This document shows, piece by piece, positions 12,848 to 55,486 of a stretch of 64,000 nucleotides of DNA (position 1 is its first letter; each line of letters starts with the position of its first letter). The translations under genes and the position numbers were made by a program. The DNA is taken from sequence record MN091626.1; one strand, 5' to 3'. Below the pieces are notes generated by a model, which was given only the letters and a program-made list of their open reading frames with translations, did not search any database and was not told where the DNA came from.

Positions 12848-13050
12848 GGATTTATACAATATAAATGAGTAGAGTACAGCCAAGCGGTTAGTAATTAAGT
12901 GATATTAGCTTAATATAATTCTATTAAATGGAAACATAAAGATTTCTAAAGTAACGTTTAGATTTAAGATATAGTCTCAACATTCAGGGAAAACCTGAAG
13001 AAGTTCATAAGAGAACTGATATAGATTAGCGATCTATATTGAAGATTTTG

Positions 13051-14286
13051 AGTACTTTAGATGTTCCTCAAGGACAATTCTTCTTTGAACAAATGAATGA
13101 TGCGGCTCAATGGACAGAAAAAATATATGATTATTACATTAATTCTGAAGAAGAAGGTAATGAAAAATTAGAAGAGTATATGGATAGTAATTCAGGTAAT
13201 TCATTTATTTATATAGAATATTCATATAAAGAATTAGGAAAAGATGACAATTGGTTAGAAAAGCAAAAACGTCAAATCGGTTCTTTAGAAGCTGTTAAAC
13301 GTGAGATACTTCTTGAATGGGCATTTAGTAATGATGATTCTTTATTTGATGAAGAACAAATGTCTGAGTTATCTCTATATGCAAATAAAGAAATATATAA
13401 CACTATTGACTTTAAAATAAATGGTAAAACTTATTATGTTCATATGGTTAAAAAGATGGAAAATATGCATGAAAAGAACTGGCTTGTTGGTATTGACATA
13501 TCTGGCGGTCTTGGTCGAGATAATACTGCATTTACTGTAGTTGATCCGGGTACATTAGAACCAGTAATGGTCTTCCAAAATAATATAATTAATGGTCCTA
13601 CTTTCAGAAAATTAATTAAAGAACTTATTACACTTTATATACCTAATGCAGTATTAATACCTGAACGTAACTATGCTGGTACAGTAATGATAGAAGATAT
13701 GATTCAAACTGATAATATTGGAGATAATATTTTTTATTCATTAAAGAATAGAACAGCAGAAAAACAAGTTGAAGTTAATAAACAAGTATTTAATGAAATG
13801 CCTAGACATAGCACTAATAAAGTTACTAAACAAGTAAGAAGATATGGTATCGATACAACTAAAAAATCTCGTGACTTAATGCTTAATGAAATTTTATCAA
13901 TGATAGTTGAAGAAAAGCCTTATCTGGTTAATAATAAACCATTATTCCAACAAATAAAATCTCTTCAAATGAAAAAAGGTAGAATTGATCATCCTGATGG
14001 CGGTCATGATGACTTACTTATGAGTTATTTATTCTGCTTATACGCATACTATTATGAAAAAGATATTAAGAAATTTGTTAAAGTTAAATACGGTTCAATA
14101 GTATCTCCAACTGGAGAAAATGCGGAAGAGATTGAAAAAGAAAGACAAGCTAGAAGAAAAGATATTGCATCCATAAAACGTATTGGTGGAATTATTGATG
14201 GTAATTCTCCTAGCAATCCTCTATTACAGAATAATAATTCCGCTCCAAATCAAAAATCAAAAAGAATAATGAATTTATTGGATTGA
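13051..14286 (+). CDS. terL: Terminase large subunit, exon 2 (RNase H-like nuclease)
   Basis: 'LVGIDISGGLGRD', 'LIPERNYAG', 'HDDLLMS' nuclease acidic motifs. Confidence 0.9.
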   Translation, partial: STLDVPQGQFFFEQMNDAAQWTEKIYDYYINSEEEGNEKLEEYMDSNSGNSFIYIEYSYKELGKDDNWLEKQKRQIGSLEAVKREILLEWAFSNDDSLFDEEQMSELSLYANKEIYNTIDFKINGKTYYVHMVKKMENMHEKNWLVGIDISGGLGRDNTAFTVVDPGTLEPVMVFQNNIINGPTFRKLIKELITLYIPNAVLIPERNYAGTVMIEDMIQTDNIGDNIFYSLKNRTAEKQVEVNKQVFNEMPRHSTNKVTKQVRRYGIDTTKKSRDLMLNEILSMIVEEKPYLVNNKPLFQQIKSLQMKKGRIDHPDGGHDDLLMSYLFCLYAYYYEKDIKKFVKVKYGSIVSPTGENAEEIEKERQARRKDIASIKRIGGIIDGNSPSNPLLQNNNSAPNQKSKRIMNLLD

Positions 14287-14293
14287 TTACAAT

Positions 14294-14327
14294 AAAGGTA
14301 ATGGCATAATAATTTGTCATTACCTTT
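14294..14327 (+). terminator. Intrinsic terminator after terL
   Basis: aaaggtaatggca / tgtcattaccttt plus T-run. Confidence 0.8.
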
Positions 14328-14464
14328 TTATTATCACAAATTTTTATTATTCCATCTTAACTAATTTGTATAATAGAATTTCAAGAATAATTTTAAATTA
14401 GAATTTTTTCTAAATTTAATAGAATAATATAATATATAATAATAAAACGGATGGTGAAAATAAA

Positions 14465-15280: not shown

Positions 15281-16027
15281 ATGACTGAAGATAAGAGCAA
15301 AGAATTAGATTTAGAAAAATTAGAACAAGATATAGAACAAGCTAATGATGAATTCGAAAAAGAAAATGAAAAGATTGAGAAAGAGTTAGAAGAAACAAAA
15401 GAGGGAATTAATAAAGAAATAGCTTCTTATTATGGTAAAGATAGTATTAGTCTTAATGACACTATTTCAGTAGATGCTAAGGTTAATAGATACCAAGAAA
15501 AATTAGACTTTATTAATGGAGATTTAAGTTTTGATAGTGAAGATGATATTCCTGAAAGACTTAAACCTTTTAAAAATATGGAAATAAAAGATACTAAACA
15601 AATTGAAAATATTATTCAACAAATTAAAGACAGTAAAGAGGCTAAACATCTTGTAGAAAATATTACTATTAGTAAATTACCTGTTAATGATAATAAACTT
15701 AAAAAAGTAAATGAAAAATTAAATATGAAAATTTACAGATATAATAAGTTACATGGTAATGAAAATAATGAATATAATTACATTGATTTAGAAGATATTC
15801 ATAATACTCTAAAAAATGCTTTAGACAACGATAGTTTCAAAGAATCAAATACATTATACAAATTTATGTGTGCATTAGGTTCATACATGTCGCAAAATTA
15901 TGAAAAATATCCTTACTATATAAAATCTCTTTCTGAAAATGTTGACTACATTGGAAAATTCGGTAATAAATTAGATCAGAACGAAGACTTTATCAAAGTA
16001 ATAAATAGTATTCTTAAGAAATACTAA
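15281..16027 (+). CDS. Hypothetical protein with N-terminal acidic coiled coil
   Basis: AAGGAG RBS; no family recognised. Confidence 0.6.
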   Translation: MTEDKSKELDLEKLEQDIEQANDEFEKENEKIEKELEETKEGINKEIASYYGKDSISLNDTISVDAKVNRYQEKLDFINGDLSFDSEDDIPERLKPFKNMEIKDTKQIENIIQQIKDSKEAKHLVENITISKLPVNDNKLKKVNEKLNMKIYRYNKLHGNENNEYNYIDLEDIHNTLKNALDNDSFKESNTLYKFMCALGSYMSQNYEKYPYYIKSLSENVDYIGKFGNKLDQNEDFIKVINSILKKY

Positions 16028-16069
16028 AATATATTATTAAAAATTATAAGAAAGAGGTTTGATTAAAAG

Positions 16070-16309
16070 ATGGAACAAATTAAATTTTATACTAAGAATA
16101 ACTGTGCTAAATGTGGTTTCAGTAAAATGTTTTTAAATAATAAAGGTGTTGCTTACACTGAAATCAATATTGATGAAGATGAAAGTGCTAAAGAAGAACT
16201 TTTATCTAAAGGATACCAATCATTACCTGTAATTGATTTTGGAACAGATGTAATCGTTGGTAATGATCCTGCTAAATTAAATCAAATTTTATCTACAGTT
16301 ACTGCTTAA
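16070..16309 (+). CDS. nrdH: NrdH-like glutaredoxin
   Basis: CAKC (CxxC) motif, 'GYQSLPVI', upstream of nrdIEF. Confidence 0.9.
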   Translation: MEQIKFYTKNNCAKCGFSKMFLNNKGVAYTEINIDEDESAKEELLSKGYQSLPVIDFGTDVIVGNDPAKLNQILSTVTA

Positions 16310-16333
16310 TTAAATATAAAGGAGATTATAATT

Positions 16334-16534
16334 ATGCAAACTATTTTTAATAGTCCAGAAGAAGTAGATTTTAAAAAATTAGCTGAGAAAGCTAGAAATA
16401 ATGATAATGAATTAAATACAAAAGCTGTTCATGAAGGAGAATACAATTACAATTTCAGTATTGAAGGTTGGAATTACTCATTCAGTTCAGATGGAACTTA
16501 TTGGAAATGGAATTATCAACAAGTTAATCAATAA
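16334..16534 (+). CDS. Stand-alone IsaA/SceD N-terminal-like domain
   Basis: AAGGAG RBS; pattern VD..L...A.N....LN......G.Y...F...G..Y.F.S.GT.W.W.Y matches the staphylococcal IsaA N-domain as recalled. Confidence 0.7.
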   Translation: MQTIFNSPEEVDFKKLAEKARNNDNELNTKAVHEGEYNYNFSIEGWNYSFSSDGTYWKWNYQQVNQ

Positions 16535-16552
16535 TAATGATTAATAAAAAAC

Positions 16553-16583
16553 GATCTATCACAGAGATAATCTGTGATGGATC
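16553..16583 (+). terminator. Intrinsic terminator
   Basis: gatctatcacaga / tctgtgatggatc followed by tattttt. Confidence 0.75.
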
Positions 16584-16621
16584 TATTTTTAACGAAAAAT
16601 TTTATATTTGGAGAGATTTAA

Positions 16622-17026
16622 ATGAAATTACTTTATTTCTCATTAACAGGAAATAGTAAAAAATTTGCTGAGAAATTAGATAGCTCTATAGTAGGAGAAC
16701 CTATTGAACTTAATAGAGATAATTGTGATGATATTAAAATGGATGAAGAGTATGTATTAGTATGTGGATCTTACAATACTCCTCACGCTATTTACAATCA
16801 TGTAGAAAAATTCTTTAATAATGGTAATAATTTAGAATTATGTAAAGGTATAATTGGCTCAGGAAATAGAAACCTAAATTATCAATTCTTAACTACACCT
16901 AAAAGATTATGTAGTGATTTTAATTTAGAATTGATTGCAGGAGTAGAATTGTTTGGAATTAAAAATGAACATTTAGAAGTAAATAAAAAATTAGAAGAGT
17001 TATCTAACTCTAGTATTATAAATTAA
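16622..17026 (+). CDS. nrdI: NrdI flavodoxin
   Basis: 'YFSLTGNSKKF', 'GIIGSGNRN', 'VELFG' in nrd operon. Confidence 0.9.
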   Translation: MKLLYFSLTGNSKKFAEKLDSSIVGEPIELNRDNCDDIKMDEEYVLVCGSYNTPHAIYNHVEKFFNNGNNLELCKGIIGSGNRNLNYQFLTTPKRLCSDFNLELIAGVELFGIKNEHLEVNKKLEELSNSSIIN

Positions 17027-17052
17027 TATATTGTAAGGAGACTTTTAATAAA

Positions 17053-19254
17053 ATGCCAAAAGAAATAGACTTAACTTCAGAAAAATTTAAAGATTATTCA
17101 TATAACGAATTAAACTCAAGAGGTTCACAATTAAAAGATGGTAATTTAGATTTAGAATTTGAATTAGCATCTGTTAAAAAATATTTCTTAGATTCAGTTA
17201 ATAAGAATGTAAGATACTTTAAAACATATAAAGAAAAAATTAATTATTTAGTTGATAATGATTATATTGATGGAGACATGATCAGTAATTATGATTTTGA
17301 ATTTATTAAAGGATTAATGAAAGAATTAATGGCTTATAAACATAGATTCACTCGTCTATTAGGAGCTAAGAAATTCTATGAACAGTATGCAATGAAAGAT
17401 GATGCAGGAGAAATTTTATTAGAACTATATGAAGATAGAATTTTATTTGTAGCTTTATATTTAGCTGATGGTGATGAAGAATTAGCTAGAAATATTGCTA
17501 ATGAAATTATTACAGGTACTTTCCAACCTGCTACACCAACATTCCTTAATGCAGGTAGAGTACGTTCTGGGGAATTAGTAAGTTGTTTCTTATTAACTAT
17601 GGAAGATTCTTTATCATCTATTTATAGAAATATTTCTAACGTGGCACAATTAAGTAAACGTGGTGGAGGAATTGGAGTATCTTTAAGTAATTTACGTGCT
17701 GACAATGATCCAATTAAAGGTGTTGAAGGAGCAGCTTCAGGAGTAGTTCCAGTTATGAAAGTATTTGAAGACACATTATCGTATGTAAATCAATTGGGTC
17801 AACGTAATGGTGCAGGTGCACTTTACTTAAACATTTTCCATAAAGATGTAGTAAAATTCTTAGATACTAAGAAAGAAAATGCTGATGAGAAAGTAAGATT
17901 AAAAACTATTTCATTAGGTTTAACAGTTCCAGATAAATATTATCAATTAGTTAAAGAAAATAAATCATTATATACATTTAGTCCATATGATATTAAAAAA
18001 TATTACGATTTAGATTTCGATAGTATTGACTTTAATACTTACTATGATATCTTTGTAGATGATAAACGTATTAGCAAAGAGAAAATGTATGCTCGTGATT
18101 TAGAAACTACTATTAGTAAATTACAACAAGAATCTGGCTATCCTTATATCATTAATATTGATACTGCTAATAGAGCTAATCCAATTAGTCATGGTACAAT
18201 TAAAATGAGTAACCTATGTAGTGAAATTTTACAAGTACAATACCCTTCATTAGTTGACGATAATCAACAATATGTTAAAACAGGAACAGACGTTTCATGT
18301 AACTTAGCTTCAACTATCGTACCTGGTTTAATGAAATCAGAAGACTTTGGTAAATCAGTTGGAACTATGTTAAGAAGTTTAAATTCAGTGGCAGAAAAAT
18401 CTAATATTGAAGCTGTACCTACAGTTAAGAAAGCTAATGATTTATTCCATACGGTTGGTTTAGGTGCAATGGGATTACACACATATTTAGCTGAAAATCA
18501 TATTCAATATGGATCAGAAGAATCTAAAGACTTTACTAATATTTATTTCATGTTATTAAACTATTGGACATTAGTTGAATCAAATAAAATTGCTAAAGAA
18601 AAAGATGAATCATTCTACTTATTTGATAAAACTGAATATGCTGATGGTTCTTACTTTGATAAACGTTATATTGGTAAAAATATTCAACCACGTACTGAAA
18701 AAGTTAAAGAATTATTTGAAGATATCTTTATTCCATCTGATAGTGATTGGGAACAATTAAGAAATAATATCGTTATGGATGGTTTATACAATCAAAATAG
18801 ATTAGCTGTAGCACCTAATGGTTCTATTGGTTATGTTAGAGAAGTATCACCTTCAATTCACCCTATTGTTGAATTAATTGAAGAACGTGTAGAAGGTAAA
18901 ACAGGTACTACTTTCTATCCAGCACCAGGTATTACACCAGATAACTTTGATTACTTTAAGAAAAATGCTTATCAATTAGATATGAGAGATATGATTGATT
19001 TATATTCAGAAGCTCAATATCATGTAGATCAAGGTATTTCTATGAATATTTATTTAATGAATGAACTTGATCCAGATCTTTATGAATGGAAAAAAGATTC
19101 TTTAGATAAAGAAACTACTACTCGTGATATTAGTAGATTACGTAACTATGCTTACAGTAAAGGTATTAAATCTATGTATTATACTCGTATTTATTCACCA
19201 GACCATGATGAAAATTCTCAAGGTATTGTTGAATGTGAATCTTGTTCTATTTAA
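17053..19254 (+). CDS. nrdE: Ribonucleotide reductase class Ib alpha subunit
   Basis: 'FQPATPTFLNAG', 'LVSCFLL', 'GQRNGAGA', 'SNLCSEI', 'AVAPNGSI', C-terminal 'CESCSI'; uninterrupted. Confidence 0.95.
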   Translation: MPKEIDLTSEKFKDYSYNELNSRGSQLKDGNLDLEFELASVKKYFLDSVNKNVRYFKTYKEKINYLVDNDYIDGDMISNYDFEFIKGLMKELMAYKHRFTRLLGAKKFYEQYAMKDDAGEILLELYEDRILFVALYLADGDEELARNIANEIITGTFQPATPTFLNAGRVRSGELVSCFLLTMEDSLSSIYRNISNVAQLSKRGGGIGVSLSNLRADNDPIKGVEGAASGVVPVMKVFEDTLSYVNQLGQRNGAGALYLNIFHKDVVKFLDTKKENADEKVRLKTISLGLTVPDKYYQLVKENKSLYTFSPYDIKKYYDLDFDSIDFNTYYDIFVDDKRISKEKMYARDLETTISKLQQESGYPYIINIDTANRANPISHGTIKMSNLCSEILQVQYPSLVDDNQQYVKTGTDVSCNLASTIVPGLMKSEDFGKSVGTMLRSLNSVAEKSNIEAVPTVKKANDLFHTVGLGAMGLHTYLAENHIQYGSEESKDFTNIYFMLLNYWTLVESNKIAKEKDESFYLFDKTEYADGSYFDKRYIGKNIQPRTEKVKELFEDIFIPSDSDWEQLRNNIVMDGLYNQNRLAVAPNGSIGYVREVSPSIHPIVELIEERVEGKTGTTFYPAPGITPDNFDYFKKNAYQLDMRDMIDLYSEAQYHVDQGISMNIYLMNELDPDLYEWKKDSLDKETTTRDISRLRNYAYSKGIKSMYYTRIYSPDHDENSQGIVECESCSI

Positions 19255-19269
19255 TTGGAGGTATTTAAT

Positions 19270-19488
19270 ATGACATTAAAAGAAAAATTTGAAAGTAAAT
19301 ATAGAAATTTAAATAAAGAACCAGAAATTTTAATTGTAGTAATTAAACTACCAAGTGGAGCTAAGGAAGTAATTTCCAATAGCTCTGACTTGGATAATAA
19401 AGTTCATTATTACTTAGAAAATTATGATGATCAATTTAGACATGTTAGAGATAGCAATGTACAGATAATTGATTTCGTATTAGTTTAA
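19270..19488 (+). CDS. Small hypothetical protein inserted between nrdE and nrdF
   Basis: GGAGG RBS supports ATG 19270 rather than TTG 19255. Confidence 0.65.
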   Translation: MTLKEKFESKYRNLNKEPEILIVVIKLPSGAKEVISNSSDLDNKVHYYLENYDDQFRHVRDSNVQIIDFVLV

Positions 19489-19513
19489 AAATAAAGAAAA
19501 AGGATGAAGTTAA

Positions 19514-20584
19514 ATGGATAGAGGAGATTTCTTAACAAGTTATACAAAAGATAAAGGTTATTATACACCTGTAAATTGGAATAGAGTAGATGATTATGTA
19601 GATATTATGACATATGACACTTTAGTATCTCAATTTTGGACATCAACACGTATTCCAGTATCTAATGATATTAAAGCTTGGTCTAATACTGATGATTTAA
19701 CTAAAGGAGTAGTTAATAAAGTATTTGCTGAATTAACTATTTTAGATACACTTCAATCTCGTGAAGGTTCTGATGCTTTAATGCATAGTGCATTAACTAC
19801 ATTAGAAGAAGATGTATTAAGAAATATCGGTTTTATGGAATCAATTCATGCTCGTAGTTATAGTACTATTTTTACTACATTATGTACTTCAAAAGAAGTA
19901 GATGAAAACTTTGAATGGGCAGAAAATAATAAATATGTACAAAAGAAAATTAAATTAATAAATGAAGCTTATCAATCTGGAGATATTCTTAAAATTCAAG
20001 CAGCTTCAGTATTCTTAGAATCATTCTTATTCTATTCAGGTTTCTATACTCCTTTAAGATTAAAAGATAGTCTTAAATCAGTTCTTGAAATCATAAAATT
20101 AATCTTAAGAGATGAGTCTGTTCATGGTTCATATATTGGATATAAATTCAGTAAGAGATTTGAAAAATTAAGTGAAGAAGAAAAAAATGAAACTAAAATG
20201 TGGGTAAATAACTTACTATTTGAACTTTATCAAGTTGAATGTGAATTCATTGAAGAAGTTTATACTGAAATTGGTTGGGCAGAAGATGTTAAATTATTCG
20301 CTCAATATAATGCTAATAAAGCTCTATTAAATCTTAAATTAGATCCTATTTTCGAAACTACTGAAGAAGATGTAAACCCTATCGTAATGGCAGGATTAAA
20401 AACTTCTACAGGAAATCATGACTTCTTCTCTCAAGAAGGTAATGGTTATTTATTAGGTAAAGCTGAAAATACTAAAGAAGAAGATTATGATTCAATCGAT
20501 ATTAATGAACTTAATAAGAATATCATTGATTCGTATAAAGATAAAGCAGACGATAGATTTAGTCATAGTTACTATATAGATTAA
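19514..20584 (+). CDS. nrdF: Ribonucleotide reductase class Ib beta subunit
   Basis: 'LTILDTLQ', 'MESIHARSYS', 'LESFLFYSGF', 'RDESVHG', 'HDFFS'. Confidence 0.95.
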   Translation: MDRGDFLTSYTKDKGYYTPVNWNRVDDYVDIMTYDTLVSQFWTSTRIPVSNDIKAWSNTDDLTKGVVNKVFAELTILDTLQSREGSDALMHSALTTLEEDVLRNIGFMESIHARSYSTIFTTLCTSKEVDENFEWAENNKYVQKKIKLINEAYQSGDILKIQAASVFLESFLFYSGFYTPLRLKDSLKSVLEIIKLILRDESVHGSYIGYKFSKRFEKLSEEEKNETKMWVNNLLFELYQVECEFIEEVYTEIGWAEDVKLFAQYNANKALLNLKLDPIFETTEEDVNPIVMAGLKTSTGNHDFFSQEGNGYLLGKAENTKEEDYDSIDINELNKNIIDSYKDKADDRFSHSYYID

Positions 20585-43482: not shown

Positions 43483-43555
43483 ATCCAAATCTCTCCTTAT
43501 ATAAAATAATTTGAAGCTAATATTCTTACTAACTTCATTAAAATAATATATATTT
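43476..43555 (-). repeat. Copy 1 of an identical promoter + RBS/start cassette (inverted relative to 49664-49758)
   Basis: 21-mer aaatatatattattttaatga (43555-43535) and 23-mer aaggagagatttggatatggcaa (43498-43476). Confidence 0.9.
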
Positions 43556-49663: not shown

Positions 49664-49758
49664 AAATATATATTATTTTAATGAGATTGAGATGGAATTA
49701 ATCTTAATACTCAAAAAATAAAAATTTTTAATTACAAGGAGAGATTTGGATATGGCAA
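49664..49758 (+). repeat. Copy 2 of the identical promoter + RBS/start cassette
   Basis: 21-mer at 49664-49684 and 23-mer at 49736-49758. Confidence 0.9.
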
Positions 49759-53375: not shown

Positions 53376-55439
53376 ATGTTAAAAAAGACTACAGAAAATG
53401 AATTAGAAAAGTTATTCAATGTCACTATTTATAATGAAGAATTTTCTAATTTAAAACCTATGTATAATAGAAAAGATACTGAAACTAGAACTAAATTAAA
53501 TGACAATCAAAATTCTAGAGTGTATGAGAATTTAATAAATTTCATTAATTATTCTAAAGCAGGAATGACACACATGTTTTTAACTCGTTCTAATAAATAT
53601 AGAGATAAATATATTGATTTTCTAAGAAATAGACTTGGTAAGGAAGATTTATTAGATGAGGTTGAATTTGAATATACAGATAGATATTTCAGATCTTTCA
53701 TATATAATATAGATATAATTAGAAGAAGTGAATATCAAACACATCAATCTATAGAAAATGACTCTAAATTAGAAGATTCATTCTTATTAAGAAATGGAAA
53801 TACAAATATAGATAGCTTTAAAACGGATAATGGTTTATCTATAGAATTTTTAGATAAAGATGTAAAGAAAGATTTTTTAGATAAGAACAAACAAATTAGT
53901 TTAGAATCTTTGCTAGCTATCGATACGATGGTGTCTAATTCATTAAGAAAGAAATGGTTAAAATCAATTGAAAAAGAAGAATTACCTGATATGAATATTA
54001 TATTTAAAGAAGTTCCAGAAGTAGTAATTATACTAGCAAACAGTATATATGAAAGATCAAATTTCAAATTATCATATGTAGATAGAAGTGTTATTAATAT
54101 ACACGCAGACGTTTCAGATGTTTTGGAATCAATACTAACTTTAACTTCTAATTTTAATTATAAATTAATATTAGATTTAATAGATGAAGATTACTTAAGT
54201 AAAAATTTAAATCATTTCAAAGCTTCTGAATTTTCTTTATCTGACAATAATGACATTGATAATATATTTAGTATAATCGGAATTATTAAAAAACAAACGG
54301 ACGTTATTAATAAATTTATAGAAAAAAGCAAATCAGATAATCTAGAAGACAATATTAATTTAATAATTAAAGAAAATGAAATAGATGATGACTTTGGAGA
54401 AATATTAAAAGTTTATATTGATAGTGTATTATCTAAATTTAGAGAATATATTGAAGATGATACCAATATATTAAAAGATTCATCTAAGGTTTTAATAGGT
54501 GAAAATCTATTTGGTTTCTTTATGAAATTAGATGATCTCGAAATTTTAATGATTAGAAATATATACAGAGTTTTAGATAGTAATGTATATAATCCTGTAA
54601 TCAGAGATGTTAAAGAATCACAAGAAAAAGTTATGAATGGAATAGTAGATTATTTTAAAAATAATACTAAAAAATTATCTTTAGATTTATCTAATATCGA
54701 TATAAGTAGATTGAAAGATAGTTCTTTCACATTATTAAACGATTTCATAACAAATGGAGAAGTAAGTAATCTTCGTATGAAACCTAATGAAGCTAATATA
54801 GAGTATTTCTATAAATTAAGTGTGGATAAAGAATTAAACCGTGACATATTAAATAGTAATATACAATATATGAAACAGGAATTATTAAAAGGTTTTAATG
54901 ATGATTCTAAAATGACTTCGAATGCTATTATTGAATTTGATAATTTTAATATTAATTTTGCTGTAATAGAAAATAATTCATATAATAATGAAATAGAAAT
55001 AATGATGCAAGGAGTTACTTTTAAGAAAAAATTAACTGATGAGGATATTGCTACTATCTTTTTATATTCACATAAAGAAGTTAGTATATATCAAGACAAA
55101 AAATTAGTTATCATGGATAGAAATTATTTCTCTAGAAGAGGTATAAATAAATTTATAAATAATATGAATAATGTCTTCACTGATTTAGATGGAGAAAGTT
55201 TATCTAAATATATGTCTTTAATTTATAATTTATTATCTTTATCAGATAATTCTTTTGAGGAAGATAAAGCAATTTATAATACTCTATATTACAATAAATT
55301 TGAATATATTAATAAAGAAAATGAGTTAAAAGTTGATAGTTATATTAATATGATTAATAATAAAGATGTAACAGATGATTTTAAAAAGAAATTTAAAAAG
55401 GTAAGATCTAAGTATTTAGTTTCTAGAATATTTATTTAA
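53376..55439 (+). CDS. Hypothetical 687-aa accessory protein
   Basis: AAGGAG RBS; ends LVSRIFI; no family recognised. Confidence 0.65.
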   Translation: MLKKTTENELEKLFNVTIYNEEFSNLKPMYNRKDTETRTKLNDNQNSRVYENLINFINYSKAGMTHMFLTRSNKYRDKYIDFLRNRLGKEDLLDEVEFEYTDRYFRSFIYNIDIIRRSEYQTHQSIENDSKLEDSFLLRNGNTNIDSFKTDNGLSIEFLDKDVKKDFLDKNKQISLESLLAIDTMVSNSLRKKWLKSIEKEELPDMNIIFKEVPEVVIILANSIYERSNFKLSYVDRSVINIHADVSDVLESILTLTSNFNYKLILDLIDEDYLSKNLNHFKASEFSLSDNNDIDNIFSIIGIIKKQTDVINKFIEKSKSDNLEDNINLIIKENEIDDDFGEILKVYIDSVLSKFREYIEDDTNILKDSSKVLIGENLFGFFMKLDDLEILMIRNIYRVLDSNVYNPVIRDVKESQEKVMNGIVDYFKNNTKKLSLDLSNIDISRLKDSSFTLLNDFITNGEVSNLRMKPNEANIEYFYKLSVDKELNRDILNSNIQYMKQELLKGFNDDSKMTSNAIIEFDNFNINFAVIENNSYNNEIEIMMQGVTFKKKLTDEDIATIFLYSHKEVSIYQDKKLVIMDRNYFSRRGINKFINNMNNVFTDLDGESLSKYMSLIYNLLSLSDNSFEEDKAIYNTLYYNKFEYINKENELKVDSYINMINNKDVTDDFKKKFKKVRSKYLVSRIFI

Positions 55440-55441
55440 AT

Positions 55442-55486
55442 ATATATTATATAATTGAGTTGATAATTGAACTTATCAACTCAATT
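55442..55486 (+). promoter_or_regulatory. Early-type ATATATTAT motif followed by 14-bp leader hairpin
   Basis: atatattat 55442-55450; aattgagttgataa / ttatcaactcaatt; then AGGAG RBS. Confidence 0.55.

Follow-up and report, generated by a model that had tools for sequence, protein, structure and literature searches.

Why does a staphylococcal jumbo phage carry, between nrdH and nrdI, a gene for a small protein that resembles just the N-terminal portion of a bacterial cell wall enzyme and has no signal for export? The question is raised by PALS2_161, an open reading frame (ORF) at 16334..16534 on the plus strand of a 64,000-nucleotide (nt) stretch of sequence record MN091626.1. This stretch is referred to as the window, and coordinates are those of the window unless another locus is named. 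The record belongs to phage PALS_2, which has a genome of 268.7 kb and infects Staphylococcus aureus. As described below, PALS2_161 is almost certainly a stand-alone, signal-less copy of the N-terminal domain (NCD) of the IsaA/SceD proteins. What such a domain might do on its own can be addressed through its relatives in other phages.

A stand-alone IsaA/SceD N-terminal domain

The IsaA sequence used for comparison, which is that of the S. aureus complex, was located with primer N1-F (isaA; supplement of PMC5557936), which matches four Staphylococcales genomes exactly and leads to an ORF of 233 aa. The IsaA N-terminus quoted in a preceding sequence-only reading of the stretch is letter-perfect in these four genomes. 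BLASTP aligned IsaA residues 34-88 with PALS2_161 residues 11-65 at an E-value (E) of 3e-13, with 20 of 55 positions identical (36%) and 64% positives; there are no gaps, just as that reading had claimed. The aligned segment falls in the published NCD, defined as IsaA residues 30-84 (PMC5557936). An IsaA fragment known as N1 (residues 30-91) associated with cells and bound non-covalently to the S. aureus wall although the catalytic domain was missing, and the N-terminal domain is surface-exposed and the target of a protective human antibody, 1D9 (PMC5557936).

Profile searches placed PALS2_161 in two PHROG families. It matches phrog_3310, a 'transglycosylase', with an E of 1.5e-15 but covers profile positions 26-82 of 231 only, and it matches phrog_3504, a profile of 57 positions and unknown function, with an E of 3.3e-13, residues 9-62 aligning to positions 2-55. 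The Pfam family PF27330 (IsaA-like_N) is precomputed on a 97%-identical orthologue (P0001) and on all short and full-length relatives. Local Pfam and NCBIfam scans of PALS2_161 itself gave no match, the Pfam copy used being one without the PF27330 model. When 33 phage and bacterial copies of the NCD are aligned, A17, L27, G35, Y37, F41, S52, G54, W59, and Y61 are invariant, and L16, A20, N28, H33, E34, Y39, Y48, and F50 are conserved in at least 90%. Eleven invariant or near-invariant residues make up the core of the domain: L16, A17, L27, G35, Y37, F41, F50, S52, G54, W59, and Y61.

In bacteria, the domain was found by six-frame search in 39 of 45 Salinicoccus-family genomes and in 150 of 199 Staphylococcales genomes (E 1e-13 to 3.8e-17), the bacterial taxon names resting on two records, Salinicoccus halodurans and Macrococcoides caseolyticum. 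Its confinement to Staphylococcales genomes, together with the known S. aureus host of PALS_2, upholds the Staphylococcus host that had been proposed from the sequence. The bacterial NCDs almost always lie in frames of 220-290 aa with a signal peptide first and an SLT-type domain last. Seemingly short bacterial copies (G133, G141, and G162) were rejected; they are full-length genes interrupted by a contig end or an N-gap.

Another arrangement is seen in the Salinicoccaceae genomes G010 (L080:748-1479, minus strand) and G008 (L081, two ORFs). These encode secreted proteins of 223-244 aa in which an unrelated N-terminal domain of ~100 aa is joined to two tandem C-terminal IsaA-like_N repeats, each with an E of 1e-17 to 1e-20, and which have no transglycosylase domain. 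Because the repeats are carried by unrelated secreted proteins, the NCD appears to be a mobile, repeatable module of the wall-targeting type. Being C-terminal, they also show that the domain is not exclusive to N-termini, contrary to what had been stated from a staphylococcal sample (PMC5557936).

The phage protein is acidic (pI 4.7) and starts with MQTIFNSPEEVDFKK. Its highest 11-residue Kyte-Doolittle mean is -0.17; thus, with no hydrophobic stretch, it has neither a signal peptide nor a membrane anchor. IsaA and SceD share the domain with PALS2_161 but have a Sec signal peptide before it and a linker plus an SLT-type catalytic domain after it, both of which are missing from PALS2_161. The N-terminal segment of IsaA carries AHA, an AXA-type cleavage site, and PALS2_161 has no such signal peptide. 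It begins at the equivalent of the bacterial signal-peptide cleavage point, ends just after the last beta-strand, 5 residues past the NCD, and lacks a C-terminal SLT/Transglycosylase-like catalytic domain. The earlier description of a 66-aa protein with neither signal peptide nor transglycosylase domain was therefore accurate, down to the ORF as quoted.

A split enzyme, with the catalytic half encoded elsewhere in PALS_2, was considered and rejected. The catalytic half of the Salinicoccus homologue had no match in the whole PALS_2, SA1, and Machias records. The catalytic half of Tgl, a secreted IsaA/SceD-like lytic transglycosylase of Kayviruses that was proposed to be a second endolysin (PMC7150955), had none in PALS_2. 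As a positive control, the same Tgl half searched against phage 812 recovered Tgl itself (E 2.5e-65) and a distant tail protein.

Judged by its sequence, PALS2_161 is not a transglycosylase. It is nevertheless labelled 'transglycosylase-like domain-containing protein' in the PALS_2 record, and its orthologues elsewhere appear as 'isaA: putative transglycosylase', 'transglycosylase SLT domain-containing protein', or 'hypothetical protein'; in Machias (MW349128; L036:1634-2145), nrdH and the NCD gene are both intact yet unannotated. The DC4 study counts the orthologue among the lytic enzymes (PMC10638138), a listing that is an annotation artefact. Since there is no catalytic domain, a better name would be stand-alone IsaA-like_N (wall-binding) domain protein.

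A model of PALS2_161 was computed with AlphaFold2 from a 33-row alignment. The mean pLDDT (predicted local distance difference test) is 91.6, and 57 of the 66 residues score at least 90. The predicted fold consists of a helix (13-21), a second, short one (26-29), and an antiparallel sheet of three strands (36-43, 46-53, and 57-63); the two helices pack on the sheet, which bears the conserved aromatic residues. Sequence searches of the PDB with the single protein and with the 33-row profile returned noise only (E > 0.3), and a Foldseek search of the PDB with the model found nothing below E 0.7. A wide VIA-align comparison gave a best Z of 3.5 to helix-on-sheet folds (cystatin, VirB8, PepSY-like), which is below the trustworthy level, and BFVD returned family members only.

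The locus, selection, and relatives in other phages

The gene and its surroundings are organized as follows.

16070..16309, plus strand: nrdH, glutaredoxin-like (Pfam Glutaredoxin, E 1e-11)
16319..16324, plus strand: Shine-Dalgarno sequence AAGGAG, 9 nt before the ATG, read from the sequence
16334..16534, plus strand: PALS2_161, ATG start, 66-aa coding sequence, IsaA-like_N/NCD with no other domain (ORF, GenBank feature, PHROG, BLASTP)
16553..16590, plus strand: intrinsic terminator with a 13-bp stem, a 5-nt loop, and a T run (terminator scan, folding)
16622..17026, plus strand: nrdI (Pfam Flavodoxin_NdrI, E 2.4e-23)
17053..20584, plus strand: nrdE, a 77-aa ORF (phrog_3915), and nrdF (ORF list, GenBank annotation)

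Only 24 nt separate nrdH from PALS2_161, and the two are probably co-transcribed. The terminator hairpin (16553-16583) has a folding energy of -22 kcal/mol and a z of -7.4 relative to shuffled sequences. Both the ribosome-binding site and the terminator named in the sequence-only reading are present. The same reading placed the gene inside the nrd operon. It does lie between nrdH and nrdI, but because the strong terminator separates it from nrdI-nrdE-nrdF, it closes an nrdH-containing unit rather than sitting in the middle of an operon.

The segment 15900-17200 is 100% identical to PALS_2 and 78.8-99.9% identical to nine further staphylococcal jumbo phages (DC4, S6, MarsHill, Madawaska, LY01, SA1, Machias, PB50, and AH12). 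The NCD ORF is intact in all eight jumbo phages from which it was extracted (66-67 aa, 58-100% aa identity to the PALS_2 copy). All eight also keep its position after nrdH and the terminator, and the MarsHill and Machias records have a terminator annotated at the equivalent place. The ratio of nonsynonymous to synonymous substitutions (dN/dS, Nei-Gojobori) among the jumbo-phage orthologues is 0.13-0.47, with dS reaching ~1. The corresponding ratios of the flanking genes are 0-0.24 (nrdH) and 0.02-0.24 (nrdI). The NCD gene is thus under purifying selection, though looser than that on nrdH and nrdI.

These data bear on the idea that PALS2_161 is a functionless remnant of a phage transglycosylase gene that was once full-length. 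Its architecture is indeed that of a fragment of a Tgl/IsaA-type protein, and its dN/dS exceeds that of both neighbours. A remnant, however, is not expected to retain an intact ORF with exact domain boundaries in eight jumbo phages as well as in over 260 further phage records, nor such ratios at that level of synonymous divergence, nor its own ribosome-binding site. The confident, compact model and the detection of a Kayvirus homologue as a protein (see below) also speak against it, and we consider this explanation highly improbable. The decay or relaxed selection that the sequence-only reading had named as its own counter-evidence is not what the orthologues show.

The stand-alone domain is also no peculiarity of the nrd cluster but a member of phrog_3504 with other contexts in Kayvirus, Sciuriunavirus, and Sextaecvirus. 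By tblastn, the NCD was found in 310 phage records, 307 from Staphylococcus phages and three from Mammaliicoccus phages. Kayviruses have two copies, one in the secreted 230-aa Tgl and the other a 57-aa stand-alone form (812 Gp41, K gp227, fRuSau02 RS_041, and 515A1 phage515_00040). This short form is present in 261 Kayvirus-like records, in Sciuriunavirus SscM-1 (gp043, 64 aa), and in the Sextaecvirus siphovirus SA2 (AWY02957, 57 aa). A word-indexed protein search, which is not a census, yielded two and then 13 short relatives. No relatives were found by scanning IMG/VR with single-protein patterns, and the ESM Atlas gave no usable match.

Like PALS2_161, the short forms start at the bacterial signal-cleavage point, end after the last strand, and contain no hydrophobic segment. 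The phrog_3504 proteins (57-64 aa) are 39-51% identical to it, and their genes often have a terminator at the 3' side; the jumbo copies alone carry a 9-residue N-terminal extension, MQTIFNSPE. Tgl is likewise phage-encoded, and an NCD-equivalent region has been noted in it (PMC7150955). Its residues 25-68 are 43% identical to PALS2_161 (E 8e-12), but Tgl is lytic, having a signal peptide as well as a domain with a catalytic glutamate, whereas PALS2_161 has neither of these elements.

In Kayvirus, Sciuriunavirus, and Sextaecvirus, the short NCD gene adjoins a phrog_3319 gene of unknown function (~140-160 aa). The pair is found at L041:2484-3177 in 812, L042:2094-2701 in SscM-1, L043:2498-3404 in SA2, and L079:1702-2398 in fRuSau02, where it forms a bicistronic unit between terminators. 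It has the look of a two-gene module; the second member was not found in PALS_2, SA1, and Machias, the jumbo phages searched. Context therefore differs within phrog_3504: elsewhere the gene is paired with phrog_3319 in a late-rising bicistron or has a holin/amidase context (in SA2 the order is holin, amidase, NCD), whereas the jumbo copies stand beside nrdH without phrog_3319.

A maximum-likelihood tree was built from 76 NCDs. As it rests on 62 columns only, many of its forks are unresolved. All 19 stand-alone phage NCDs nonetheless fall on one side of a single branch (support 84/77), and adding five bacterial copies to them gives a group with support of 97/96. The closest bacterial relative found, a Macrococcoides caseolyticum protein with 55% identity, is within this five-copy set. 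The NCD of Tgl is placed among the bacterial copies, apart from the stand-alone clade, although a joint clade was not rejected (approximately unbiased test, p 0.07). PALS2_161 belongs to a phage clade that is closer to the copies of Macrococcus than to those of S. aureus. On this sequence evidence, the phage NCD is derived from the host lineage in a broad sense and was not copied recently from S. aureus isaA. The host origin claimed for it earlier stands in that wider sense; a recent transfer from S. aureus does not, given 36% identity to IsaA, 55% to the M. caseolyticum protein, and the clustering of the phage copies.

It may further be supposed that the stand-alone NCDs had a single origin and were exchanged among three unrelated lineages (AR9-like jumbo phages, Twortvirinae myoviruses, and Sextaecvirus siphoviruses) as a dedicated, non-enzymatic wall tool for release or adsorption. 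This is a speculation that we regard as doubtful. If it were true, the roles of the domain could include masking debris sites against progeny loss, docking particles, and displacing IsaA/SceD at the septum. The copy in therapeutic Kayviruses might also be seen by the common human anti-IsaA antibodies, the 1D9 epitope region lying in the IsaA NCD.

Catalogue entries already exist for the domain (PF27330) and for its stand-alone phage form (phrog_3504), and the gene is publicly annotated mostly under a wrong or empty name. A literature search found no paper that discusses the stand-alone form, and the PALS2 phage paper does not mention PALS2_161.

A possible late role at the cell wall

The functional assignment draws on homology and on data from relatives. 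Phage proteins that act on the wall normally have no signal peptide and await the holin. A signal-less NCD is for this reason best read as a wall binder that gains access to its ligand once the membrane has been breached, or that exits the cell on particles or debris. By analogy, PALS2_161 may be a non-catalytic wall-binding protein that acts late, through holin lesions or with particles, an assignment that we put forward as tentative. It would be made in the cytoplasm and reach the wall as endolysins do, passing through the lesions made by the holin as infection ends or being carried along with released particles and debris. There it would bind the staphylococcal wall non-covalently, like the NCD of IsaA, and take up the sites to which NCDs bind, assisting lysis or release without catalysis. 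Candidate outcomes are aid to lysis, masking of debris sites, docking of particles, and displacement of IsaA/SceD. As an explanation of PALS2_161 as a whole, this is the best available, and we are close to evenly divided on whether it is correct.

The late, lysis-associated timing is suggested by the relatives: the holin-amidase adjacency in Sextaecvirus, a late rise of transcripts in Kayvirus, and detection in a particle preparation. In phage 515A1, transcripts of the homologue were at 27-46 counts per million (CPM) at 5 min, ~34 at 15 min, and 119-131 at 30 min. The rise at 30 min was 3.3-fold (false discovery rate 7e-6), occurring in step with the phrog_3319 neighbour and opposite to the adjoining early genes. 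In fRuSau02, RS_041 (57 aa), confirmed as an NCD homologue, and RS_042 (phrog_3319) were both identified with LC-MS/MS in purified particles.

The same observations raise the main alternative, that the protein is a virion component, a small wall-binding decoration or adhesin that is assembled onto the particle in the cytoplasm and helps it to dock on the staphylococcal wall. Such a protein would need no signal peptide. RS_041 and RS_042 are annotated 'structural protein', their homologues both rise late, the NCD-phrog_3319 pair is conserved in three genera, and in Sextaecvirus it is located just upstream of a DUF2479 protein that we read as putatively tail-fibre-like. On the other side, the fRuSau02 list includes many non-structural proteins, about which its authors caution, and a wall binder would adhere to the debris carried through phage purification. 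The 515A1 homologue is among the lowest transcripts of that phage (27-131 CPM), phrog_3319 is missing from the jumbo phages searched, and mass spectrometry of the DC4 virion did not detect the NCD protein. A structural role is thus unlikely.

There are precedents for free wall-binding subunits in multimeric endolysins, such as PlyCB of PlyC and the internally initiated domains of CD27L, CTP1L, and Lys170, which are non-catalytic, cytoplasmic, and signal-less and reach the wall at lysis. Subunits of this type are encoded in or beside the lysin gene and assemble with the catalytic chain. PALS2_161 differs from them in that its neighbours are nrdH and nrdI, the endolysins PALS2_239 and PALS2_240 being encoded elsewhere with no lysin adjacent to it. 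Sextaecvirus SA2 is the sole case in which the NCD gene follows an amidase gene.

Since the NCD was published as a cell-wall-binding module (PMC5557936), competition for wall sites is another possibility. This is the decoy or competitor role proposed in the sequence-only reading, and it amounts to one form of the wall-binder explanation. The phage protein would then be a competitor or dominant-negative form of host IsaA/SceD, taking septal wall sites or pairing with the NCD and thereby altering autolysis, cell separation, and clumping. The domain is identical in kind to the wall anchor of IsaA, with the core residues conserved, and isaA sceD mutants clump and separate poorly (cited in PMC5557936 and PMC7150955). 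But a protein that stays in the cytoplasm until the membrane is breached has little time in which changes in autolysins could matter. Identity to S. aureus IsaA is 36%, Macrococcus proteins being closer, and the presence of secreted full-length Tgl alongside the short form in Kayviruses does not resemble simple antagonism. We consider such a role quite unlikely.

Several points weigh against a late wall binder in the jumbo phages themselves. The gene is accompanied there by genes of nucleotide metabolism, a class that is usually early or middle. No AACA-N6-TA/G late motif and no clean AR9-type early promoter was found for the nrdH-NCD unit. Possible transcription is seen in RNA-library contigs with S6-type variants from three unrelated studies (tick, bat, and whole-organism), which cover the NCD ORF, and one of which, at 16023-16482, spans nrdH and the NCD ORF; these may, however, stem from DNA carry-over and are no proof of transcription. 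The 78 proteins listed for fRuSau02 particles include clear carry-over, namely NrdE, NrdF, and sigma factors, and the only jumbo-phage virion proteome, that of DC4 with 15 proteins, lacks the NCD protein. The predicted fold has no significant structural neighbour to suggest a ligand, and wall binding by a stand-alone NCD would be an extrapolation from the IsaA fragments N and N1.

The nrd context is the starting point for a further alternative, in which PALS2_161 has an intracellular role away from the mature wall, for example by binding, in the replication phase, to a wall precursor in the cytoplasm or to a protein of the host or the phage. The position after nrdH in eight jumbo phages, the short intergenic gap, the shared terminator, and the lack of an export signal would all fit such a role. 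So would a site at 16025-16037 (plus strand), upstream of nrdH, which resembles the AR9 early promoter. This site, however, has two mismatches and no +1 G, and the AR9 virion RNA polymerase is reportedly intolerant of even one deviation from its promoter. Only the jumbo clade shows the nrd context, relatives being found in lysis or late contexts, and in phage SA1 gene position and timing are uncoupled (PMC9414953). An intracellular function is therefore improbable, and a late-acting wall binder continues to be the reading that we prefer.

In PALS2_161 and its relatives, a selected, predicted well-folded module of the wall-binding type, with no enzyme attached, is conserved in staphylococcal phages that differ greatly from one another, therapeutic Kayviruses among them. 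PALS2_161 is easy to express and assay and could serve as a minimal staphylococcal wall-binding tag. The stand-alone form could also help to define the ligand of the NCD of IsaA/SceD.

Other features of the nrd cluster and the window

The nrd cluster of the jumbo phages is an insertion hot spot. In SA1 (L034:2219-2962), a 247-aa ORF without a PHROG or Pfam match separates the NCD gene from nrdI. LY01 has an additional ORF (L035:2648-3361) and a split nrdE, and Machias has an HNH endonuclease (L036:3528-4106) within an nrdE that is in three pieces. In the window, the ORF between nrdE and nrdF (19255-19488) has a TTG start and is 77 aa long (73 aa in GenBank, as PALS2_164); it matches phrog_3915, of unknown function, with an E of 2.7e-11.

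S6-type contigs matching 16023-17082 are present in RNA libraries from tick metagenomes, bat metagenomes, and a whole organism, the libraries coming from three or four independent studies. This is a hint that animals commonly carry S6-like jumbo phages or their hosts.

Exact copies of the AR9 early (virion RNA polymerase) promoter consensus, AAATATATATTAT, occur at 43543-43555 (minus strand), 49664-49676 (plus strand), and 55438-55450 (plus strand). Because of these copies, PALS_2 appears to share the early promoter of AR9.

For a 415-aa ORF at 13039-14286, the match to the large terminase (phrog_2) is restricted to the C-terminal region, positions 408-604 of 807, and the ORF is, judging from this match, probably one piece of a split terminase gene. 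A terminator-like hairpin follows it at ~14296-14330.

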